In this document: positions 6,043-29,285 of the stretch, in pieces
How positions within the stretch are numbered: the first letter of the stretch is position 1
How the letters are laid out: the number at the start of each line of letters is the position of its first letter
Sequence record: OR538032.1
Direction: 5' to 3' (one strand)
DNA: 64,000 nucleotides
The notes under the pieces: generated by a model
Seen by the model: only the letters and a program-made list of their open reading frames with translations
Told to the model about the DNA's origin: nothing
The model's database searches: none
Program-made: the position numbers and the translations under genes

Positions 6043-6342
6043 ATGAAAGAAGTATCAACAACAACTTACAAAAGCACTCCAGAACTGGCTCTTGATATTG
6101 CAGCATATGCATCACTGTTAGTCAAGATGGGATATGATGAGTGTGTCACAAATCAGAAACTCTTTGTTGAAATGTGCAATGAAGCAGGATTTAGAACCAC
6201 AACGGGCAAAGAATTCACGCAGATGTCTTTTCGACAAATGTTTGCTCGTCTTCCGCAAGGGACTAAGCGCGAAGTTCGTGAATCGTTCTCGTGGGGTAAT
6301 GTCCCGCAAGGTGAATCAATTTTAGAAAGCATTTATGTTTAA
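6043..6342 (+). CDS. hypothetical protein; weak resemblance to serine-recombinase DNA-binding motif
   Basis: CNEAGFRTTTGKEFTQMSFRQMF resembles LN..G..T..G..W motif. Confidence 0.55.
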   Translation: MKEVSTTTYKSTPELALDIAAYASLLVKMGYDECVTNQKLFVEMCNEAGFRTTTGKEFTQMSFRQMFARLPQGTKREVRESFSWGNVPQGESILESIYV

Positions 6343-6687: not shown

Positions 6688-7263
6688 TCACTGTACTTTC
6701 TTAGTTCGCTTGTCAATCTCGTTAACTTTACTTTCAAGATTGTCAATACGAGTATTAAGCATTTCTCCATCTTTCCCCGTAAAGCGGTCAGTTGAATCAA
6801 TGTTAATCAATGTCTCGACTCTGGCTAAATCAGTCTCAATCTTAGAGTAACGTGAATGGGTACCGTCTATCTTAGTAATAATGGCGTTCTGAGTGTTTTT
6901 AATACTCTCCACTGAGTTTACTAGATTTTTGTCGCCCAACTCTGACGCACTCCTCAATGCTCTTACTTCGCTCTCAAGACTACCATAGTTTACAAGCACT
7001 TGATCTTGCTTTTTAACGATAAGAGCTTGCGCTCCTTCTAAGCCAATCAGTTGTTGTGCCTGCGTTGCGTTTGTTAGTTTGATGTCAGTTATTTCTTGCA
7101 TGATTTTAGCGTTTTGAGCAACTGCGGTTTTACCTTGTTCTTGGACAACTTGTAATGCTTCCTGCATACTACCGTAGTTTGTCGCCACGCTCATTGAGGT
7201 GATAGCCAGAGGGATAAGAATAGTACCTATAACAGCTAACAAAAATTGCGCCATTTTACTCAT
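6688..7263 (-). CDS. N-terminal TM plus coiled-coil late protein (holin- or spanin-like position)
   Basis: one hydrophobic segment then heptads; own TATAAATA; follows gene 37-like. Confidence 0.6.
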   Translation of the reverse strand: MSKMAQFLLAVIGTILIPLAITSMSVATNYGSMQEALQVVQEQGKTAVAQNAKIMQEITDIKLTNATQAQQLIGLEGAQALIVKKQDQVLVNYGSLESEVRALRSASELGDKNLVNSVESIKNTQNAIITKIDGTHSRYSKIETDLARVETLINIDSTDRFTGKDGEMLNTRIDNLESKVNEIDKRTKKVQ

Positions 7264-7318: not shown

Positions 7319-10300
7319 AACGAAGCAACTTCTTCCACCATGGGCGTTTAAGCTCGTGTACTTCGTTCTGAAGCGTGTCTACTTTTGCATTAAGCTCTTT
7401 GATAGCTTCAATCAAAAGACCGTTCATATTGCCGTACGCGACTGATAGAATACGTTCTTCGTCGTCACTTTCCACCACTGCTTCTGGCAGTACTTTTTCC
7501 ACTTCTTGCGCAATCACACCCGTCTCACGAATATATTCGTCAGAATCGAATGAACTACGCTTGTCATATGTATACCCGTTTAATTCACCTACTTTATTGA
7601 GTGCATTATCAATAAGCTTGATGTTTTTCTTCAAACGTCGGTCTGAGTACGCTGTCACGTTACCCGGAGCAGTGAAGTTACCAGTTGAATACTGGAATGA
7701 CCATTGCTTAGTCGTTGAGCTATTCAGCGACGAAACGATCTGAGCCGTATGCGCGCCAGAAGAACTCAAAATAGCACCGAATGAGTGCTGATAACGACCA
7801 CCCGAGTGGTTAATATCACCTTTCATAAAAGCATGATATTCACTAGTACCCGAACTTGATTTGTAGTGATAAAATGGAGCTTGTGACGTGTAATGCGAAG
7901 CATATGCATAAGATGCCGCAGATCCGTAAGCCGTCATCCTACCCGTAGACAACAATGCACTTTGAACTGTTACATCAGTAAAGTCATTCCCATAGTTGAC
8001 AATCAAGTTTGACGTTGTACCTACTAATGCTCGCTTATCACGAATCTTGAAATCTTGACCGCCATTTGAGCTAATCAAAGAAGACCCGAGATAGGTTGCT
8101 GTGGTAGCAGTCGTAGCCGATGTCGCCGTCGTAGCGTTGCCACTCAGAGAACCCACGAATGTCGGCGCTGTTACACTATGCGCAAACACCGCAGTTCCGT
8201 TTTCGTTCAACCTGAAATCATCAGATGCACTACCGTTGTATCTAAACGCCATGACGCCGTTTTGATGGTCAAGCTGCCAGTAGTTATCGCTGTACGTACT
8301 GTCCATCAAGTTCAACTGAACGTTTGTGTGTCGAATCGTCAACTGTCCATTGATCGTATCCCCTGCTTTGCTAACCGCACCAATTTCAGCCAATGACCAT
8401 GCAACGTTAGCAGATCCGTTTACTGATTTGCCAGTATTACCGATTGTCAATGTACGAGCATTAGCCCACGTCGTCGCTGTACTTGCATTCCCACTCAGTG
8501 GGCCTACAAAGCTACCACTCATAGTCCCGCCGATAACTGATATATTACCAGACGAATTGCAGTCTAGGCGAATGTCATAATCAGCCGTGCTATTAGTCGT
8601 GTGGAAATCAATATATCTCGCAACTTCAAGCACACCAGCAGATGTAACTTTTGCTAGGTATTTGTTAACAATCCCTGCGAATGTTTGAGTTGTCGAGAAC
8701 TCGGAATTTTGTGCAAATCGAGCATCGGATTCAGATTCAGTGTAGTACCGACCATCGTGAGTATGAGAGTCATTTGCCACAGTAACTGTCATTGTCGCAT
8801 TTGAGCTACCGTCAAACGAAACTGCGCCACTTACATCGCCGTTTAGCGTCAGCGTACGAGCAGTAGTCCATTTGTCAGCATTTGGATGATAACCGTCATG
8901 AAACACATTGTTGCTTCCGTATTTCAAAACCCCATCAACTGAAGACAATACCCCGTCAATACCCCAGAAATTTGAGTGATAGTTGCCGCCCGTATTGACA
9001 AACTCATGGTAAACTTCAACAGTATAGTTCGATGTGTGCCATGTCGAAACAGCAGGATCGCCATCTACATCAATGAAGAAATTGATTCTATTACTACTTG
9101 CCGCAGATTGAGTAGTATTAACAACCGTCCATGCACCGTTGATATTAGTGAATGTCGCGCTAGATGCCGAGTCAGTAGTTCCAGTGCCCGTAATTACAGC
9201 TCGTACACGGATAGAACCTTGCGTAATCGCAGCCCCATTTTGGTCTAACAACTTAGCAGGAGCATTGATGTTTACTGCATAGTCTCGGCGATACTTGTAC
9301 ATCCCTCCGTAGAAATCACCCGTGATCTCTTTAGCTGTCCATGTTACATTACTCGTACCATCTACTGACTTACCAGTGTTACCGATTGTCAACGTCCTTG
9401 CAGTTGTCCATTTATCAGCATTCGGGTGATAAGCATCGTGAAACACACGTTGGTTTACTTTCGCGAAAATCTCACCTTCAACTTCAAGACCAGCAGGTGA
9501 AGCAACACCGCCATTCTGACGCAGAATCAATGCCTGACCATTACCACCAGCCGTGTTAATATCACCGTCAGTGATCTCGTGAATTAGCTCAAGGTTTTGA
9601 CCAGCACCTGTAATCCAGTTGATACCTGAATTGTTGTTTGCGTAATCAGTTTCATTGAAACTCAAACGCCCAGATGCTTTGCTGATTGCCACGTTACCAG
9701 TGAATGTGTCACCTGCCACGTTTGCAAATCGAGCATCAGATTCAGTCTCAGTGTAGTAACGCCCGTCGTGTGTATGTGAATCGTTCGCTACAGTAGCTGT
9801 AACGGTCACAGTTGCATTAGCCGACCCATCTATAGTCATAGACGCAGAACCGCTCACATCGCCCGTTAGAGTCGTTGTTAGAGTGCGTGCAGTTGTCCAC
9901 TTATCAGCATTTGGGTGATAGGCGTCGTGAAACACATTGTTATCTTTGTACTTGATCGCAGTTGTATTAACAACAAACCCACTTGCAGTCGCTGAACCGA
10001 CTTGCAACGTACCATCAGTACGAACTAGAGACGAGCCGAAGTATACGCCAGATGTAAATGCAGCTTGGTCATTGATTCTCAACCATGTATCGAACCCGCG
10101 AATTGCAGTTTTCGCGTTGATGTCAATGTTCTCAATGCCGAAGTTTGCTGCCGTTGCATCAATACGAAATCGAGTTGTCGCTGTATCATTTTCACGTAAA
10201 CTAAAATTGCCACCGTCGTTGATCAAATACCAACGTTTTGTACCGTCATTATCTTGAAGCAACAAACGAGGCGAAGCACCACGAATTTCAATTTCATTCG

Positions 10301-13907: not shown

Positions 13908-14438
13908 CTATTTGCGCCCTTTACGATTTGCCTTATTTGCTTTTCTTTTTGCTCTACGCAACTCTTTGCGTTTTGCGATTTTGTCTGCACGTCTAACTGC
14001 ATCATAATCCGCAGCACACGACGCAGCAAACGCATCAGGCTTGAAAACGGGTTCTTGACCCACGTATCCCAAGATAGTGCCCTTAGCTTCGTTATACGCA
14101 ACGTGTGAACGATGGGATGGGTCTGGGTTGATGTCAACGTGAACTTCAAACCCACGAGTACCACACATTGGCTTAACACGCAGGGCGGTTTCACCTGCTT
14201 TATAGACTTCATTCATCAAACGACTACGAATACCATCTTTACAAGACATGTACGCTGGTTCAGTTTCGATAGATTTGAATACTTGAGCGCCTTTACTACC
14301 CTCAAGGTGAATGATGATTACAGTAGCGTAACTAATCATATCACTCTTACGCTTGCTATCACACCCAACATAAATCGTACTGTTCGGATGACTGTTATTG
14401 ATAGCTGTTTCAATTGCTTCCCAATCGAACATTTTCAC
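13908..14438 (-). CDS. RNase H-like protein, YkuK family
   Basis: YVGCDS, RLMNEV, EVHVDIN, FKPDAFAASCAAD. Confidence 0.8.
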   Translation of the reverse strand: MKMFDWEAIETAINNSHPNSTIYVGCDSKRKSDMISYATVIIIHLEGSKGAQVFKSIETEPAYMSCKDGIRSRLMNEVYKAGETALRVKPMCGTRGFEVHVDINPDPSHRSHVAYNEAKGTILGYVGQEPVFKPDAFAASCAADYDAVRRADKIAKRKELRRAKRKANKANRKGRK

Positions 14439-14482: not shown

Positions 14483-15919
14483 TTAAAAGCTGTAGCGATC
14501 AACGCCTACAGTTTTCAGCATGATCTTGACTGGCTCAAGCTCACCACCTAACAGTGAAGTCAGGATAGATGGGCTACAACCCGATACCAGTGCAGTACCC
14601 GCTTCGCCAGCTTTAACCGGAACGTTGCCAAGACGACCACGAATGTTCCAGAAGACTAGTTGTGGCATTTCATAGCCAGCACGTGCGTACATAGCTTTGA
14701 TTGCGTCGAAGTTTGCACGTTCGCCGCGACCGTACCAGCCACCACCAGTATTTGCTTGGTCGAATTCCATGTCGCTCATGATAAGCAACTTAGTTGGCAT
14801 TTCTTCTTGTGAAAGATTTGCACGTTTTGCACGTTCTAACAGAACGTTGAAGCACTTACCGATGTTTGTGCTCATGTCTTCGCCTGAGCGATTCATGTTG
14901 TCAAGACGCTCTTTTAGTGAGCTACCGCGCAACTGGTGGAAGTGCGGATCGCTTGAGAACGAAATGAACTGATCTTTGAAGATGCCTTCATTGCGTTCAG
15001 CAACATAGATGCCAAGAGACATTGCAACTTGCTTACAAGTCACACCCGAACGATCTGTACCTGCGTTGATTGGCGTGCTCATAGAGCCAGATACGTCAAC
15101 AACAGGGATGATGCGCTCATCAGAGCCTTCCATGTAGTTCGGCAGAGCTTTCCATTGCTCGTTCGCTACAGACGCATTGCCATGACTAACGCTCTTAACG
15201 ACATCATATGGGAACAATGCACCAGCGTTGATCTTCGCTTCACCTTTTTGAAGTGACTCGATGTAGCTTGTGTAACGAGCAGAAGCGTTACGACCGAATG
15301 CTTGTTGATAACGAGCAGACGCTACAGATGGCAACTTACCAAAGTCGATTGCATCCCATTCTTGAGCACACATCTTCTGTTCAACAGTGTCAGACAAAAG
15401 TGCTAGAATCTTACGCCACTGCTTCGCAGTTACACCAAGAGACTTGATTGTGCGCTTGAACACATGACCGTTTTTGCTGTTTTCACGTGGGAACCACTTA
15501 GCAGCAAGACCGTTCTTGTCGTTTACAATCGCGTTTGACCACAATGTGATCGCGTCTTTCTCAAGACTTGTACCGAACGCAGAAATCAAGTCGTCGAAAC
15601 GACCTAGTTCTGGAATTTTCGACATTACAGCACGAGCTACGTCAGGCTGCTCATTACAAAGTTTAGTGAATAGAGTACGGAAAGTACCACGTTCACCCGC
15701 ACCACCGCGAACATCACGAGACCATAAAAGAATGCGTGTCGCTAGTTCGGGGTTTTCTGCAAACGCACGACCGAACAGTGTTTTAGACTGATCGTTACCA
15801 CGCATAGCAGCAATACCGAAGAACAAGTTTAGACACTCGTTACCTGAAGTGCTGTGAGTAACTGCACCGTTTGCTGTACGTGAATCGTTTGATTGCATAG
15901 CGTTCATAAATGCTGACAT
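14483..15919 (-). CDS. DUF2828 protein (TROVE/Ro60-like helical domain plus vWA)
   Basis: TANGAVTHSTSG, RDVRGGAGER, LAAKWFPRE; vWA MIDAS DVSGS, SDMEFD, VFWNI. Confidence 0.85.
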   Translation of the reverse strand: MSAFMNAMQSNDSRTANGAVTHSTSGNECLNLFFGIAAMRGNDQSKTLFGRAFAENPELATRILLWSRDVRGGAGERGTFRTLFTKLCNEQPDVARAVMSKIPELGRFDDLISAFGTSLEKDAITLWSNAIVNDKNGLAAKWFPRENSKNGHVFKRTIKSLGVTAKQWRKILALLSDTVEQKMCAQEWDAIDFGKLPSVASARYQQAFGRNASARYTSYIESLQKGEAKINAGALFPYDVVKSVSHGNASVANEQWKALPNYMEGSDERIIPVVDVSGSMSTPINAGTDRSGVTCKQVAMSLGIYVAERNEGIFKDQFISFSSDPHFHQLRGSSLKERLDNMNRSGEDMSTNIGKCFNVLLERAKRANLSQEEMPTKLLIMSDMEFDQANTGGGWYGRGERANFDAIKAMYARAGYEMPQLVFWNIRGRLGNVPVKAGEAGTALVSGCSPSILTSLLGGELEPVKIMLKTVGVDRYSF

Positions 15920-15967
15920 TGTTTATTCCTCATATTAAATTGCTGTAAAATGTCGTTTTGATGTGAT

Positions 15968-15996
15968 GATTATACACGGATTTGAACCCGTGTAAA
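15968..15996 (-). promoter_or_regulatory. T4-type early promoter for the DUF2828 gene
   Basis: GTTTAC-N17-TATAAT with TG and upstream A-tract. Confidence 0.8.
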
Positions 15997-16657: not shown

Positions 16658-17024
16658 CAATATATTCCTTAATCGGCTTAGAAAAGTGACGAATACAAGA
16701 ACTGTCAAGTCGTTTACGACCATCACCATCTATGTCTGGTAGCGTGTAATCGTCATTAAACGGCTGACCGCTTTCTTTCGCAATCTCATAGGAATCGGCT
16801 CGATTGAAGTATTCACCACAATAGTTGATAAAACCTTGACCGCGATCACCGAGTTCGTTTCGATGTTCATATGTACAACCTAGTTCTTTCAATAACTTAA
16901 AGACTGATTGCATGTTTCGACCGAAATGGCAGCTATCAGCAACAACAATGTCTCGCTGTTCGCCGTTCGGTAGCGTTACTCGAATTGCATTAGCAGCAGA
17001 CGATATTACATTGACGTGCGACAT
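16650..17024 (-). CDS. conserved phage hypothetical protein
   Basis: GFINYCGEYFNRADSYEIA motif. Confidence 0.7.
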   Translation of the reverse strand: MSHVNVISSAANAIRVTLPNGEQRDIVVADSCHFGRNMQSVFKLLKELGCTYEHRNELGDRGQGFINYCGEYFNRADSYEIAKESGQPFNDDYTLPDIDGDGRKRLDSSCIRHFSKPIKEYIDG

Positions 17025-17362
17025 GTATCGTACCTCATAAAAATTGAACCAACGCGCTTATACTGACCAGAGTGAGAAAGCAACAGAGCCATTTTACTAT
17101 GACCAACAGGATTGCTTGTCACTAGAACAACAGTGCGCGGAAAATTACGATGATCAATCGCATGAGAGAGAATATCGTATCCCTCTCTACCAACATCATC
17201 ACCTAGATCGTTATCCATGAATAGCGTGATGTCAGTTAGATTTGTGTGCTTGACGAAATTCATACCGTCTTCGAATGTTCGAAGTACGAGTTTTTCATCA
17301 TCACGTACGTAATCTGACGTGAACTTATTAATATCACGCAGATCATCAATCATAACGTACAT
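17006..17362 (-). CDS. cyclic-phosphate-processing receiver-like domain protein
   Basis: MIDDLR, LFMDNDLGD, EGYDIL, VTSNPVG. Confidence 0.7.
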   Translation of the reverse strand: MYVMIDDLRDINKFTSDYVRDDEKLVLRTFEDGMNFVKHTNLTDITLFMDNDLGDDVGREGYDILSHAIDHRNFPRTVVLVTSNPVGHSKMALLLSHSGQYKRVGSIFMRYDTCRTSM

Positions 17363-19038: not shown

Positions 19039-19062
19039 AAAAAAACCTGCTCAAGGCAGGTT
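19039..19062 (-). terminator. terminator ending the tRNA/ncRNA operon
   Basis: AACCTGCC-TTGA-GCAGG-T7. Confidence 0.75.
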
Positions 19063-19074
19063 CTAATGTGCAAT

Positions 19075-19325
19075 ACACAGACATTCGAGAAGTGTTTTAT
19101 CGTCTTTGCTTAAATCTCAATTGACTATCTCGATGTTTCTCATCGAGAAAATACCCATGATTCGGCATGAGACCTATTTCGTTTTACAGTACGAACACCG
19201 TCTTAATGGTCATTTCCTACCACGAGAATGCGACAGGCTCACGTCATCACTGAGAAAGCAGCTAGTGCGCCTCATTACTATTAAAGTTTGCTTCTTTGAT
19301 TAGTAATATTGCTGTACAATGTCTT
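19075..19325 (-). ncRNA. about 250-nt structured ncRNA carrying the CWGCA motif (paralog 1)
   Basis: terminal stem AGACATT/AATGTCT; 3' block homologous to 21350-21566. Confidence 0.7.
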
Positions 19326-19335
19326 ATTGCGAATT

Positions 19336-21349: not shown

Positions 21350-21566
21350 TACAGACAATACCGAAGTGTTTTTCGTCTTTTGCATTAATCGGAGTTGACT
21401 AGCTTATTGATTCTCAACAAGCAAATATCGTCTGTTTCAGCGACGCGCCTATCTGACTATTTCTAGGCAGAGAGAATCTTTCCTTTCAAGCTGCGCCGAA
21501 GCACTGCCCAGGTTAAGATCATTACCATTTTTAAGTAATTTTCAATTGTTTGCTGTATATTGTCTC
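21350..21566 (-). ncRNA. about 215-nt structured ncRNA carrying the CWGCA motif (paralog 2)
   Basis: terminal stem AGACAATA/TATTGTCT; 3' block homologous to 19075-19325. Confidence 0.7.
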
Positions 21567-21626
21567 TCTACCATACTCATGATATGCCGAAGCAAAGTAT
21601 CATTCGCCGCATGATAGAGCTTAATT

Positions 21627-21778: not shown

Positions 21779-21853
21779 TGGTGGACACGCAGGGAGTCGA
21801 ACCCTATCTTCCTCATTGCAAGTGAGGCGCTTTCCCAATTAAGCTAACGGCCC
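21779..21853 (-). tRNA. tRNA-Ala(TGC)
   Basis: G3-U70, anticodon TGC; irregular acceptor stem. Confidence 0.8.
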
Positions 21854-22098: not shown

Positions 22099-22174
22099 TG
22101 GTGCCCTGACACGGATTTGAACCGCGAACCTGCTCATTACAAGTGAGCTGCACTGCCAATTGTGCTATCAGGGC
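22099..22174 (-). tRNA. tRNA-Thr(TGT)
   Basis: cloverleaf, CCA. Confidence 0.9.
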
Positions 22175-22180
22175 GTTACT

Positions 22181-22293
22181 GAGTGTTATTACTTGCGTCG
22201 TCCAGACCAGAGATACCAACTCTGAAAGGGAATCGAACCCCAAACATTTCTTTTCGTAAGAAGAATATTAGTAATTGTTTGCTGAAAACACTC
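22181..22293 (-). ncRNA. circularly permuted tRNA-like RNA (YrlA/Y-RNA-like architecture)
   Basis: terminal stems with bulged TTCAGCAAACA, internal T-arm GGGG-TTCGATT-CCC, loop-closed acceptor-like stem. Confidence 0.7.
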
Positions 22294-22302
22294 TTCGGTA
22301 TT

Positions 22303-22376
22303 TGGCAGGGGATAACGGATTCGAACCGGTACTGCGTGAGTCAAAGTCACGTATGCTGCCTTTACATCAATCCCCT
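22303..22376 (-). tRNA. tRNA-Gln(TTG)
   Basis: cloverleaf, G73, CCA. Confidence 0.9.
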
Positions 22377-22772: not shown

Positions 22773-23150
22773 TTATTTATTCGATGCGTGTTCTTCTCTG
22801 TGGCAATTCGCACATAACATGATGCATTTATCAAGCTCTGGGACAATTCTCTCCCATCGTTTGCAACCGCCACTAGCAATGCCAAAGTCTTTCCCATTCG
22901 GGTCTGTATGATGAAACTCTAATGCTTCAATGCACTTATCATACCCACATCGTTCACAGCAACCACCTTTATATTCAACCGCCCTCAATTTAGTACGGCG
23001 TCTATATGATACCACTGCTTCTTTATTCTTTTGTTTTCTCTCGTCATCTGTTCGAAATTTCAATTTCTTACCGTTGTATAAACCAGCACATCGACGACTA
23101 CAGAATTTATTGTTGTGTGTTTCTGCACCACACTCTAAGCATTTATTCAT
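22773..23150 (-). CDS. HNH endonuclease (homing-endonuclease-like)
   Basis: CLECG...FCSRRC zinc motif; CERCG...EFHH...LCANCHREEH. Confidence 0.85.
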   Translation of the reverse strand: MNKCLECGAETHNNKFCSRRCAGLYNGKKLKFRTDDERKQKNKEAVVSYRRRTKLRAVEYKGGCCERCGYDKCIEALEFHHTDPNGKDFGIASGGCKRWERIVPELDKCIMLCANCHREEHASNK

Positions 23151-23290: not shown

Positions 23291-23349
23291 CAGCAATCCT
23301 TTTCTCTTTTTCCAAATAAAAGTTTTGTATTGTTTGCTGAAAGATTGCT
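23291..23349 (-). ncRNA. short hairpin RNA carrying the CWGCA motif
   Basis: AGCAATCTTT/AAGGATTGCT stem, CAGCAAACAAT bulge. Confidence 0.55.
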
Positions 23350-23764: not shown

Positions 23765-23853
23765 ACAGCTTGCGTTCTTTGGTCTGTTTATCGCTGTCTG
23801 AACTGAGTTCGCCGAGCGATCAATAGATTAAGTTAAATTGCAGTATGCAAGCT
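23765..23853 (-). ncRNA. about 87-nt RNA carrying the CWGCA motif
   Basis: AGCTTGC/GCAAGCT stem followed by ATACTGCAA; inner ATCGCT/AGCGAT stem. Confidence 0.6.
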
Positions 23854-25729: not shown

Positions 25730-25845
25730 TGGTAGTCGGGGCTGGATTCGAACCAGCGACCACGTGCTTAACAGGCAATTGAAGGAGTGCTGGAGCGATA
25801 CTTGTCAGTATCATTCTTCGTGCTCTACCACTGAGCTACCCGACT
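25730..25845 (-). ncRNA. tRNA-Asn(GTT) scaffold with 41-nt motif insertion in the anticodon stem
   Basis: deleting 25778-25818 gives a regular 75-nt cloverleaf with CCA. Confidence 0.8.
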
Positions 25846-27395: not shown

Positions 27396-27517
27396 TGGTG
27401 GAGAGTACGGGATTCGAACCACGTGACCAAAAGATTTACCTAGTTAGGGTTTGCAGCATGAATGCTTATCAGAATTCTTTAACATTCTTTTGCTCTACCA
27501 GACTGAGCTAACTCTCC
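27396..27517 (-). ncRNA. tRNA-scaffolded RNA A (motif module in place of anticodon loop)
   Basis: GGAGAGT/ACTCTCC-ACCA, D arm, T arm, about 50-nt insert. Confidence 0.75.
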
Positions 27518-27523
27518 AGAATT

Positions 27524-27641
27524 TGAGGGTGAAGTACAGGACTCGAACCTGCGACCTCCGGCGTGCATAAAATGCAGCATGAAATCTTAACAGACTTCTA
27601 TTGTTTAGACCGGCATTCTAACCAACTGAACTAACTTCACC
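27524..27641 (-). ncRNA. tRNA-Asp-like scaffolded RNA B
   Basis: GTTCAGTTGGTTAGAATGCCGG...CACGCCGGAGGTCGCAGGTTCGAGTCC with insert in the anticodon loop. Confidence 0.75.
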
Positions 27642-27649
27642 ATAAAAAC

Positions 27650-27782
27650 ATATTGAGCAGGGTGCAGGACTCGAACCTGCGTCACGATCTTGAAATGATA
27701 TGCGAATTGATTGCAGAATACAAACTTAACAGCTTGCGTTTATGCTACGTGTGCTAGCCACTACACCAACCCTGCTCAATAT
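27650..27782 (-). ncRNA. tRNA-scaffolded RNA C with 14-bp terminal stem
   Basis: ATATTGAGCAGGGT inverted repeat, D and T arms, motif insert. Confidence 0.75.
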
Positions 27783-28032: not shown

Positions 28033-28179
28033 GAGAGTACATTGGTCGAGTGTAACGGAATCGAACCGTTCCCACGATCTCCCTATGATATGCGTAAATT
28101 GGTTGCTGAATATAATCATGTCTGATTACAGTATGCTACGTGTGCTGCCACTACACCAACACTCGACCAATGTACTCTC
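28033..28179 (-). ncRNA. tRNA-scaffolded RNA D with 21-bp terminal stem, paralog of C
   Basis: GAGAGTACATTGGTCGAGTGT perfect inverted repeat, D and T arms, motif insert. Confidence 0.75.
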
Positions 28180-28582: not shown

Positions 28583-28837
28583 TTAAACGGAAATGATAAT
28601 GCCGCTTTCAGTCTCACCTCGTTCAAGCGCAGCGTGCTTGATCTGAAGTTGTGATACTGCTTGCTGAAGTTCAATAATAGCTTTGTCATAAAGCTTGTTG
28701 TTCTCTTTAAGCAAAGCAATTTGATCGGTCTGCATACCAATGATGTACGTTAGTAGAACAACGTTCTCATCAGTCGTCAGCGTTTCAGGCGCTTCATTGT
28801 ACTTCTTCAGCACCGCTTCGGTAGATAGATCAGTCAT
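28583..28837 (-). CDS. coiled-coil hypothetical protein
   Basis: TAATG coupling to 57B. Confidence 0.65.
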   Translation of the reverse strand: MTDLSTEAVLKKYNEAPETLTTDENVVLLTYIIGMQTDQIALLKENNKLYDKAIIELQQAVSQLQIKHAALERGETESGIIISV

Positions 28838-29285
28838 TATTAGCAACCCATTCTAGATCTAGTGGTTCGATATATTCATCGACAAGACGAACCTCTGTAT
28901 TGATGAACATAGGGGTGATTACGTCGTCATAAGACAATGTGACGTGCGGAGTATAGTCAGGGTAATCGTGAGTACCACCGATAGAGATAAGGTCTTCGTG
29001 ACGTTCTACAAGAGCAGGACATGACATCTTAGCAACGACCGCGTGTTTACCGTCTTGCGTTTTCCAACAGTCAACTTGTTCAACAGTGGCAACGAAAGTG
29101 GTATCTACAACAGGCACATCAATTTGCTTACGACTATAAAGCACAGTCACGTGAAATTTATCTGGATCTAACGGATTTTTTAGACGAAGCGTTTTTTGCA
29201 AGCGAACTAGCTCTTGCTTACTTGCTTCGTCTAATTTGATACCAACGTAAGTTCCCTGACTCTCAAGGAACTTAGATAGTTTCAT
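28830..29285 (-). CDS. 57B: gp57B / Acb1 2H-phosphoesterase (anti-CBASS nuclease)
   Basis: HVTVLYSR and YTPHVTLSY HxT motifs, WKTQDG, EYIEPLDLEW; synteny with 57A and 1. Confidence 0.9.
   Translation of the reverse strand: MKLSKFLESQGTYVGIKLDEASKQELVRLQKTLRLKNPLDPDKFHVTVLYSRKQIDVPVVDTTFVATVEQVDCWKTQDGKHAVVAKMSCPALVERHEDLISIGGTHDYPDYTPHVTLSYDDVITPMFINTEVRLVDEYIEPLDLEWVANND

Follow-up and report, generated by a model that had tools for sequence, protein, structure and literature searches.

What is encoded by a 113-nt segment that lies between two tRNA genes of a Vibrio phage, and does it give rise to an RNA with a function of its own? The segment belongs to a window of 64,000 nt from sequence record OR538032.1 (the whole stretch of DNA that we analysed), whose source is the KVP40-type Vibrio phage PG216 (100% identity over the 3 kb compared); KVP40, which is of the T4 type and belongs to the genus Schizotequatrovirus, shows 96% identity in this comparison. 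An initial sequence-only reading had regarded the segment as a tRNA mimic opened at the anticodon, with the architecture of the bacterial YrlA Y RNAs. We arrived at a related but more specific reading, to which we assign a probability of roughly 0.65, namely that the element is a diverged Y-RNA-like small non-coding RNA of YrlA-like layout, which derives from a tRNA and is the partner of a Ro60-like protein encoded by the phage. The tRNA cluster extends from 19.3 to 27.0 kb and comprises 27 tRNA genes according to ARAGORN and 30 tRNA matches according to Rfam, all of them on the minus strand. Both programs recover the two real tRNAs between which the element had been placed:

22303-22376, minus strand: tRNA-Gln, upstream flank (ARAGORN and Rfam)
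22181-22293, minus strand: candidate Y-RNA-like element, 113 nt (sequence, conservation, covariation)
22099-22174, minus strand: tRNA-Thr, downstream flank (ARAGORN and Rfam, 68.7 bits)

At the homologous position, the KVP40 record carries no annotation. On the minus strand, promoter-like sites lie near 24.5 kb and a terminator-like hairpin occupies 19042-19064, and since no promoter- or terminator-like site is located on this strand between them, the element probably belongs to a polycistronic tRNA precursor.

With blastn, the element was recovered from 48 phage records, at identities from 100% down to 75%. Of these, 11 entered the alignment, to which the distant Vibrio phage 1.081.O was added later. 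The letters of the minus strand are exactly those given in the sequence-only reading, and in 5' to 3' order the RNA consists of GAGUGUU, UUCAGCAAACA, AUUACU, AAUA, a hairpin in the position of the variable arm (V hairpin), AUGUUU, a T arm, UU, the CAGAG hairpin, the GUC hairpin, GCA, AGUAAU and AACACUC. The following parts can be distinguished:

22287-22293, minus strand: 5' strand of the terminal stem, GAGUGUU, pairing with 22181-22187
22276-22286, minus strand: 5' motif, the 11-nt UUCAGCAAACA, with the family core (U)UACAGCAA (motif scan, family alignment)
22248-22265, minus strand: V hairpin UUCUU-CUUACGAA-AAGAA (RNAalifold; U-A to G-C in 1.081.O)
22227-22241, minus strand: T-arm mimic GGGG-UUCGAUU-CCCU (loop fits the tRNA T loop; stem covaries)
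22208-22224, minus strand: hairpin CAGAG-UUGGUAU-CUCUG, acceptor-like or a D-arm homologue (3 of 5 pairs covary; loop nearly invariant)
22197-22207, minus strand: mini hairpin GUC-UGGAC-GAC with a conserved GG (just 3 bp and one U-A to U-G change; weak support)
22187-22193, minus strand: 3' motif AGUAAUA, 5' of the 3' strand of the stem with a one-base overlap (comparison with relatives)
22181-22187, minus strand: 3' strand of the terminal stem, AACACUC (RNAalifold; pairing count)

Folded as a single sequence, the element is unremarkable (-23.5 kcal/mol, z = -1.17; 24 of 200 shuffles fold equally well), and the case therefore rests on the comparison with relatives. Over the 10 distinct sequences used for the pairing and covariation counts, the imposed structure pairs in 98.3% of the cells compared to 93.0% in column shuffles, and two-sided changes occur at 6 pairs compared to 2.4 in the shuffles; none of 500 column shuffles reached the value of 6. 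Shifting the 3' partners by 1-3 columns lowers the pairing to 46-68%. Without a given structure, RNAalifold arrived at the same helices, from the terminal stem, V hairpin and T arm to the next hairpin and the mini hairpin, with covariation at 7 pairs. The terminal stem, which had been proposed from the sequence, has 7 bp and pairs in 100% of the cells; it is invariant among the Vibrio phages except for one U-A to U-G change. Likewise, the proposed variable-arm-like hairpin and T arm were borne out. The outer pair of the T stem is found as G-U, A-U, C-G, G-C and U-A, and 1.081.O has replaced the whole T stem (GCGAG/CUCGC) and carries a U-A to G-C swap in the V hairpin (UUCGU/ACGAA). The hairpin after the T arm occurs in the variants CAGAG/CUCUG, CAGUG/CACUG, UAGAG/CUCUA and CUGAG/CUCAG, and as GUGC-UUGGUAU-GCAC in 1.081.O. 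Compensatory changes in the T arm, the next hairpin and the V hairpin thus support a conserved structured RNA. An inner stem ATTACT/AGTAAT, which the sequence-only reading had proposed next to the terminal one, with the 11-nt motif as a bulge, did not survive the comparison, as it is missing in D482/K566 and in 1.081.O, was left out by RNAalifold and is unsupported beyond the close relatives of KVP40.

The succession of stem, V hairpin, T arm, further hairpin(s) and stem is the order described for YrlA (Chen et al. 2014, PMC4201824), which supports the central idea of a permuted tRNA order closed by a stem of the 5' and 3' ends. In both RNAs, a conserved single-stranded motif directly follows the 5' strand of the terminal stem, the interior with V hairpin, T arm and further arm(s) corresponds to a tRNA opened at the anticodon side, and the length is about 110 nt. 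Moreover, an A-rich segment precedes the 3' strand, which reads AAAAC in the Rfam YrlA consensus and GUAAACA or AGUAAUA in the family of the element. In 254 bacteria and in 22 phages, YrlA RNAs are neighbours of genes for Ro60 (PMC4201824), the protein with which Y RNAs usually associate; YrlA is bound by Ro60 and carries psi55 and dihydrouridine modifications. As with YrlA, the strand of the element also encodes a ring-shaped protein of the Ro60 type that includes a vWA domain, which in the case of the proposed partner is a predicted fold:

14483-15919, minus strand: gene of a 478-aa DUF2828 + DUF7788 protein, proposed partner (Pfam, AlphaFold2, Foldseek)

This gene is located 6.3 kb (6.26) downstream of the element. 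Its KVP40 counterpart, KVP40.0300, is annotated as 'RNA-binding protein', and PHROG 850 is likewise named 'RNA-binding protein'. The AlphaFold2 model, which was based on 35 homologues, reached a mean local confidence (pLDDT) of 84.7 and a predicted TM-score (pTM) of 0.87. When it was compared to the PDB with Foldseek, the top 7 matches were all Ro60/TROVE structures (E 6e-9 to 2e-6, TM 0.50-0.62 across the full length, 510-574 columns, probability 1.00), including those of Thermus phage phiLo (9KOP, 9L5Y), Xenopus Ro60 (1YVR, 2I91) and 9NFA, while isolated vWA domains appeared only from E = 6.5e-3 upward. The residues D275, S277 and S279 are invariant in the alignment of DUF2828 homologues and are read as the putative DxSxS MIDAS signature of a vWA domain, so that the model fits the description of a HEAT-repeat ring with vWA/MIDAS domain. 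The phage is thus predicted to encode a Ro60-fold protein on the strand of the element.

A phage-borne system of this kind has precedent. In Thermus phage phiLo, the Ro60 protein has two Y-like RNAs of the phage itself and the host PNPase as binding partners (PMC12135203). Like the locus studied here, the phiLo locus (Yrl1/Yrl2 with phiRo60; PMC12135203; 9KOP, 9L5Y) combines a phage Ro60-fold protein with Y-like RNAs upstream on the same strand, and the predicted model finds its closest structural match in the phiLo protein. However, the two proteins share only about 16% sequence identity, the phiLo RNAs were chosen by a CGAA motif and a stem-bulge-stem shape, unlike the element, and no tRNA cluster context has been described for them.

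DUF2828 homologues occur in 711 of 50,697 phage records, often beside tRNA clusters and genes for RNA ligase or RtcB. Carriers include Campylobacter phage CP81, Listeria phage AG20, the Felix-O1-like coliphage EC6, Aeromonas phages and mycobacteriophages; the mycobacteriophage gene is named 'Ro-like RNA binding protein', and elsewhere the gene is usually called 'hypothetical' or 'RNA-binding protein'. A further 80 DUF2828 loci were taken from IMG/VR, and a covariance model built from the Vibrio-phage copies only (R1) was searched over 1.44 Mb. The element itself scores 136.6 bits by construction. The best matches outside the Vibrio phages of the model, with E values from 2e-4 to 6e-2, are all located on the strand of the DUF2828 gene (L numbers are our own handles for loci):

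L067, 8362-8461, DUF2828 gene strand: R1 match, 33.6 bits, E 2e-4
L089, 9284-9400, DUF2828 gene strand: R1 match, 32.4 bits, E 5e-4
Coliphage EC6, 6895-7024, DUF2828 gene strand: R1 match, 28.3 bits, E 5e-3
L063, 6571-6705, DUF2828 gene strand: R1 match, 25.1 bits
Mycobacteriophage MsGreen, 6043-6174, DUF2828 gene strand: R1 match, 23.5 bits

When folded, these non-Vibrio RNAs display the full YrlA layout, with the terminal stem and UACAGCAA followed by T arm, AS hairpin and canonical D arm, as illustrated by the L089 RNA, GGAUUCU-UACAGCAAC-...-CAGAGG-UUCGAGU-CCUCU-(AS hairpin)-GUA-GCUC-AGUUGGUA-GAGC-ACGUAAACA-GAAUCC. The terminal stems differ across phages, yet all of them pair (GGACCCC/GGGGUCC, GACCGUU/AACGGUC, GGAUUCU/AGAAUCC). 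The Rfam YrlA model matches three of these RNAs below its threshold (38-39 bits, E 4e-5 to 8e-5), overlapping the R1 matches. In MsGreen the RNA lies 106 nt past the 'Ro-like' gene, and in MsGreen, L078, L096 and L067 the RNAs stand directly beside the DUF2828 genes with no flanking tRNAs. We also scanned with a descriptor that combines a 6-bp stem, CAGCAA at most 4 nt further on, a T loop following after 28-60 nt and the stem partner after 60-150 nt, which gave 17 matches on the gene strand and 2 on the opposite strand, compared to about 1 (0-3) in shuffled sequence. CAGCAA and GUUCGA are invariant in an alignment of 15 family sequences, and (U)UACAGCAA directly follows the 5' strand of the terminal stem in all family RNAs. 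The segment ahead of the 3' strand reads AGUAAUA in the element and GUAAACA or AAAAAC in relatives, and AAGUAAUA of the 3' motif segment recurs identically in L067 at 9424-9552. The element fits a provisional family whose members have a 6-7 bp stem, (U)UACAGCAA at a distance of 0-4 nt from it and a T loop after another 28-60 nt and are located on the DUF2828 strand. Because full-layout RNAs are found beside DUF2828 genes elsewhere, we read it as a reduced member, which on sequence comparison retains stem, motif, V hairpin and T arm but has a shrunken D arm. An IMG/VR pattern scan for a T loop plus a UUGGUAU hairpin recovered only KVP40 and VH7D themselves, and E. coli genomes contained no match.

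These relatives also bear on the hairpin after the T arm, which had been called acceptor-like. Its existence stands, as it covaries, but the identity is contested: UUGGUAU, its invariant loop, partly coincides with the D-loop core AGUUGGUA, the 1.081.O form GUGC-UUGGUAU-GCAC is close to the D arm of L067b (GUGU-AGUGGUA-GCAC), and in L067a, L067b and L078 the T arm runs straight to the D arm without an AS hairpin. The hairpin may therefore be a homologue of the D arm. In 1.081.O, a D-like remnant, GGUGCGCUGGUA, follows the UUGGUAU hairpin. Under either assignment, T-loop and GG-loop parts are present that could form a tRNA-like elbow.

The motif is not confined to the element. TTCAGCAAACA with up to one mismatch occurs 8 times in the window compared to 2.6 expected occurrences, and 6 of the 8 copies are on the minus strand. 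A copy of the motif also precedes the gene of the proposed partner protein:

15940-15947, minus strand: motif copy UACAGCAA in the leader of the DUF2828 mRNA, about 10 nt ahead of the Shine-Dalgarno sequence

The leader is arranged in the order TTTACA (15991-15996), a 16-nt spacer, TATAAT (15969-15974), UACAGCAA, GAGGA and AUG. VH7D and 1.081.O keep the leader motif (position -26/-27 relative to the start codon), and so does Aeromonas phage 4_4572 (position -41), but most other DUF2828 loci do not. We infer that it represents a putative autoregulatory binding site. The spacer of the promoter-like site (15969-15996, minus strand) resembles a tRNA T arm (ACACGG-GUUCAAAU-CCGUGU).

Further copies on the minus strand follow individual tRNAs of the cluster. 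Right after tRNA-Trp, a 58-nt element at 23292-23349 consists of a stem plus the motif (AGCAAUC-UUUCAGCAAACA-...-GAUUGCU) and has no tRNA-like part, rather like YrlB; its VH7D version, AGUAAUC/GAUUACU, shows a compensatory C-G to U-A change, and MsGreen carries a similar small element, GGACACA-GACAGCAAUUAC-...-UGUGUCC, just ahead of its YrlA-like RNA. After tRNA-Arg (21466-21572), a (GA)n/(UC)n stem, GGUAGAGAGA...UCUCUCUGCC, surrounds AUACAGCAAACA and two hairpins and is also present in KVP40 and VH7D; owing to its low complexity, the pairing is weak evidence. A copy AAGACAUUG-UACAGCAAU at about 19150-19330, which is kept in KVP40, VH7D and 1.081.O, follows tRNA-Ser at the 3' end of the cluster just ahead of a terminator-like hairpin, and UACUGCAAU at about 23838-23845 follows tRNA-Tyr. 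Here the string GACAUUnUACAGCAA recurs, which the DUF2828 mRNA leader contains as well.

The same module is also found in a second arrangement:

28043-28165, 27655-27775, 27527-27640, 27397-27518 and 25730-25845, minus strand: five long tRNA-like genes, 114-123 nt

These genes have a normal acceptor stem, D arm and T arm and an insert in the anticodon loop, which measures 22-50 nt by ARAGORN, with its narrower limits, and 44-54 nt by the Rfam tRNA alignment of the three matched genes. Three of the five are tRNA-Pseudo-3, -4 and -5 in the KVP40 annotation. In the insert, an A-rich segment, a hairpin, the motif (variants UUCAGCAAC, UUCUGCAAUC, UUCAUGCUGCA and UCCAGCAC) and a second hairpin follow each other, and genes of the same kind occur in DUF2828-bearing Aeromonas phages (L018 2030-2149, L022 13029-13149, L062 14028-14148). 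As in the element, a module of A-rich segment, helix, UUCAGCAAC-type motif and second hairpin is joined to T and D arms; unlike the element, these genes have an open acceptor stem that bears a CCA-type end, and a loop closes the motif helix in the place of the anticodon loop. To judge from this arrangement, the long tRNA-like genes look like the opposite circular permutation of the Y-like RNA. A match of the Rfam YrlA model at 27468-27587 (31 bits) was discarded, as it runs from the 3' half of one long tRNA-like gene into the 5' half of its neighbour and thus is the dimeric-tRNA artefact of YrlA searches of which Chen et al. (PMC4201824) warned.

In T4, the tRNA cluster encodes two further small stable RNAs, species 1 and species 2 (rnaC and rnaD), which are matured together with the tRNAs. 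T4 rnaC carries a T arm, CCGGG-UUCGAAU-CCCGG, as does the element, but we found no convincing similarity of sequence or layout between rnaC or rnaD and the element, and rnaC is without CAGCAA. Near the 3' end of rnaD (L103 1554-1672, minus strand), ACAGCAGAAAC is a faint echo of the motif.

Several results weigh against the reading as a Y-RNA-like partner of a Ro60-like protein. The search with the Rfam YrlA model that the sequence-only reading had suggested gave no match to the element at E ≤ 10, and cmscan of 22170-22305 returned no Rfam family at this threshold, YrlA (RF02553) included, which is present in the searched library with a gathering score of 69 bits. The first 30 nt contain no copy of the YrlA motif GNCGAAN0-1G; instead, UUCAGCAAACA follows the stem, in line with (U)UACAGCAA as the motif of this family. 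A canonical D arm is lacking; compared to the conserved D stem-loop of YrlA (type GCUCAGUUGGUAGAGC; PMC4201824), it has shrunk to a 3-bp or 5-bp hairpin (GUC-UGGAC-GAC and/or CAGAG-UUGGUAU-CUCUG), and the acceptor-like stem may be missing. The element is located in a tRNA cluster at a distance of 6.3 kb from the protein gene, whereas YrlA is found within the rsr operon and nearly all best matches of the published survey lie at most 4 kb from a Ro60 gene (PMC4201824). On the protein side, the partner belongs to DUF2828/DUF7788 and not to Pfam TROVE, as for YrlA: Pfam at E ≤ 10 gave only DUF7788, DUF2828 and a weak VWA_CoxE match and no TROVE, phmmer against the PDB sequences found no Ro60, and the protein profile reached the PDB Ro60 entries 9KOP/9L5Y only at E = 0.21, so that the link to Ro60 rests on the predicted fold. 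Strict descriptor matches are present in only 10 of 78 metagenomic DUF2828 loci, and the family link runs one way, from the Vibrio model outward, plus the overlap with Rfam YrlA. A model without Vibrio sequences was abandoned, since MAFFT alignments misplaced the 3' strands and an R1-guided alignment was contaminated by partial tRNA hits.

Three neighbouring open reading frames (ORFs) encode proteins of RNA-end or nucleotide chemistry:

17006-17362, minus strand: cREC_REC (cyclic-phosphate processing receiver) ORF (Pfam)
13908-14438, minus strand: RNaseH_like (PF04308) ORF, directly after the DUF2828 gene (Pfam)
28830-29285, minus strand: Acb1/2H phosphoesterase ORF (Pfam), which we take to be at the T4 57B position

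These neighbours fit a theme of RNA surveillance or repair (see PMC7824862). Within the cluster, an Rfam tRNA at 21782-21853 (minus strand, 44.9 bits) is absent from the ARAGORN calls and is tRNA-Pseudo-1 at the homologous position of KVP40, and a 125-aa ORF at 22773-23150 (minus strand) had no Pfam match in our scan. KVP40 aligns to just 82% of the 3-kb stretch compared, and the relatives PVA8, PC-Liy1 and nt-1 annotate an HNH endonuclease inside it, which points to variation by mobile genes within the tRNA cluster.

Could the element act without the DUF2828 protein? As a decoy of the tRNA elbow, it would distract a host factor such as a tRNA-targeting defence nuclease, a modification enzyme or RNase P, and the motif would serve otherwise. 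The T arm and the GG-loop hairpins, which are kept by covariation, the surrounding cluster of about 30 tRNAs with its five long tRNA-like genes and the RNA-repair and anti-defence genes nearby, e.g. Acb1, would agree with such a role. We nevertheless regard it as unlikely, since it leaves unexplained both why the module of motif and stem travels with DUF2828 genes in unrelated phages and why the motif recurs in the DUF2828 mRNA leader, and since the element offers neither an anticodon arm nor an acceptor end as a target of a nuclease or synthetase.

The tight spacing in the cluster raises a different explanation, according to which the element is a cis-acting spacer that guides the order of folding and cleavage of the tRNA precursor and from which no RNA accumulates. 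The element starts only 9 nt past tRNA-Gln and ends 6 nt ahead of tRNA-Thr, there is no minus-strand terminator inside the cluster, and the AGU directly after the stem is invariant. However, the remaining tRNA spacers of the cluster (2-20 nt) need no such structure, RNAs of the same layout stand alone beside DUF2828 genes in MsGreen, L078, L096 and L067, and an invariant single-stranded motif of 11 nt exceeds the needs of a processing spacer. We therefore give this explanation still less weight than the decoy.

A decaying, functionless tRNA pseudogene would account for the behaviour of the 1.081.O homologue (593-661), which scores 34.9 bits with the Rfam tRNA model and whose V hairpin, with a 5-bp stem and a 7-nt loop, resembles an anticodon arm. 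These two features point to descent from a tRNA. Loss of function is very improbable, though, because three helices are kept by compensatory changes, and because the motif and the loops stay unchanged at an overall identity of 75%, in contrast to the variable flanking spacers; moreover, the acceptor pairing behind the tRNA score is not conserved in the KVP40 group. In the 1.081.O record (L021, MG592456.1; 33-4204), the tRNAs are annotated on the strand opposite to the Rfam calls.

A functional tRNA gene in circularly permuted form, the product of which is joined again after processing (as is the case in some algae), would explain the permuted order of T-arm and D-like parts, but can hardly be credited: the hairpin in the acceptor position has 5-6 bp and a closed 7-nt loop and lacks both a discriminator and CCA, an anticodon loop is missing, the two ends pair over 7 bp and carry the 11-nt motif, and the element was neither called by ARAGORN nor matched by the Rfam tRNA model (RF00005) at E ≤ 10. 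To our knowledge, the splicing endonuclease route of permuted tRNAs is not known in bacteria or phages. The T4 MotA box has the consensus (a/t)(a/t)TGCTT(t/c)A, and a DNA-level reading, by which the reverse complement TGTTTGCTGAA of the motif is such a box with TATTTG 12 nt further on (TTTGCTGAA-12 nt-TATTTG on the plus strand; AsiA is present according to the KVP40 annotation) in an antisense middle promoter, was rejected as equally implausible, since the motif keeps its RNA context and orientation in the mycobacteriophage, the Felix-O1-like coliphage and Aeromonas phages, since the spacing to a -10-like hexamer is not conserved at other copies and since transcription would run into the antisense strand of tRNA genes.

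If the element is a Y-RNA-like partner of the DUF2828 protein, it would be transcribed within the polycistronic tRNA precursor and excised by the enzymes that mature the tRNAs, presumably by RNase P at tRNA-Thr and by the 3' maturation of tRNA-Gln. Its ends would pair into the 7-bp stem with UUCAGCAAACA on the 5' side and AGUAAUA on the 3' side, and the interior, i.e. the T arm and one or two small GG-containing hairpins, would imitate the tRNA elbow, as suggested by the covariation of the T arm and the next hairpin. The module of stem and motif may bind the Ro60-fold protein, in line with their co-occurrence across phages and the motif in its mRNA leader, and the tRNA-like module may recruit or occupy a factor that recognises tRNAs, by analogy the host PNPase as elsewhere or, alternatively, RNA-repair enzymes. 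During infection, the resulting particle would function in the surveillance, repair or decay of structured RNAs, tRNAs among them, and the motif copy in the leader would allow free DUF2828 protein to repress its own synthesis. We propose these roles for the factor and the protein because of the analogy to Rsr-Y RNA-PNPase in Deinococcus and Salmonella (PMC4201824, as background) and to Ro60-Yrl-PNPase of phiLo (PMC12135203).

A broader claim, for which we put the odds slightly below even, is that DUF2828-type proteins constitute a second, phage-borne branch of Ro60-like ribonucleoproteins with an RNA module of their own, which is built in two opposite permutations and encoded in or beside tRNA clusters. 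Its recognition module may be a helix flanked by UACAGCAA and, at the opposite side, by an A-rich segment, and its RNAs may also include minimal versions consisting of the stem only and a leader copy that could autoregulate. The system may operate in KVP40-type and Felix-O1-type phages, Aeromonas phages and mycobacteriophages, where it may serve the surveillance or repair of tRNAs or counter host defences that target them. Y RNAs with tRNA-like domains beside Ro60 genes are already known from bacteria and 22 phages (PMC4201824); new are the proposed DUF2828 partner family, the different motif, the reduced tRNA-like domain, the placement in a T4-type tRNA cluster and the apparent sister forms. 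In the literature on DUF2828, on YrlA or TROVE with phage and on KVP40 pseudo-tRNAs, which did not cover the supplementary phage list of 2014, the element is undescribed.

If the Ro60 fold and the Y-like, tRNA-mimicking RNAs hold true, a common phage gene would obtain a testable function, and several 'pseudo-tRNA' genes and unannotated spacers would be accounted for. CAGCAA beside a helix would offer a simple sequence handle for binding studies. One would then have to ask how a phage benefits from a Ro-type particle that is built around its own tRNA genes, and Y RNA biology would come to include T4-type and Felix-O1-type phages for which laboratory hosts are available.

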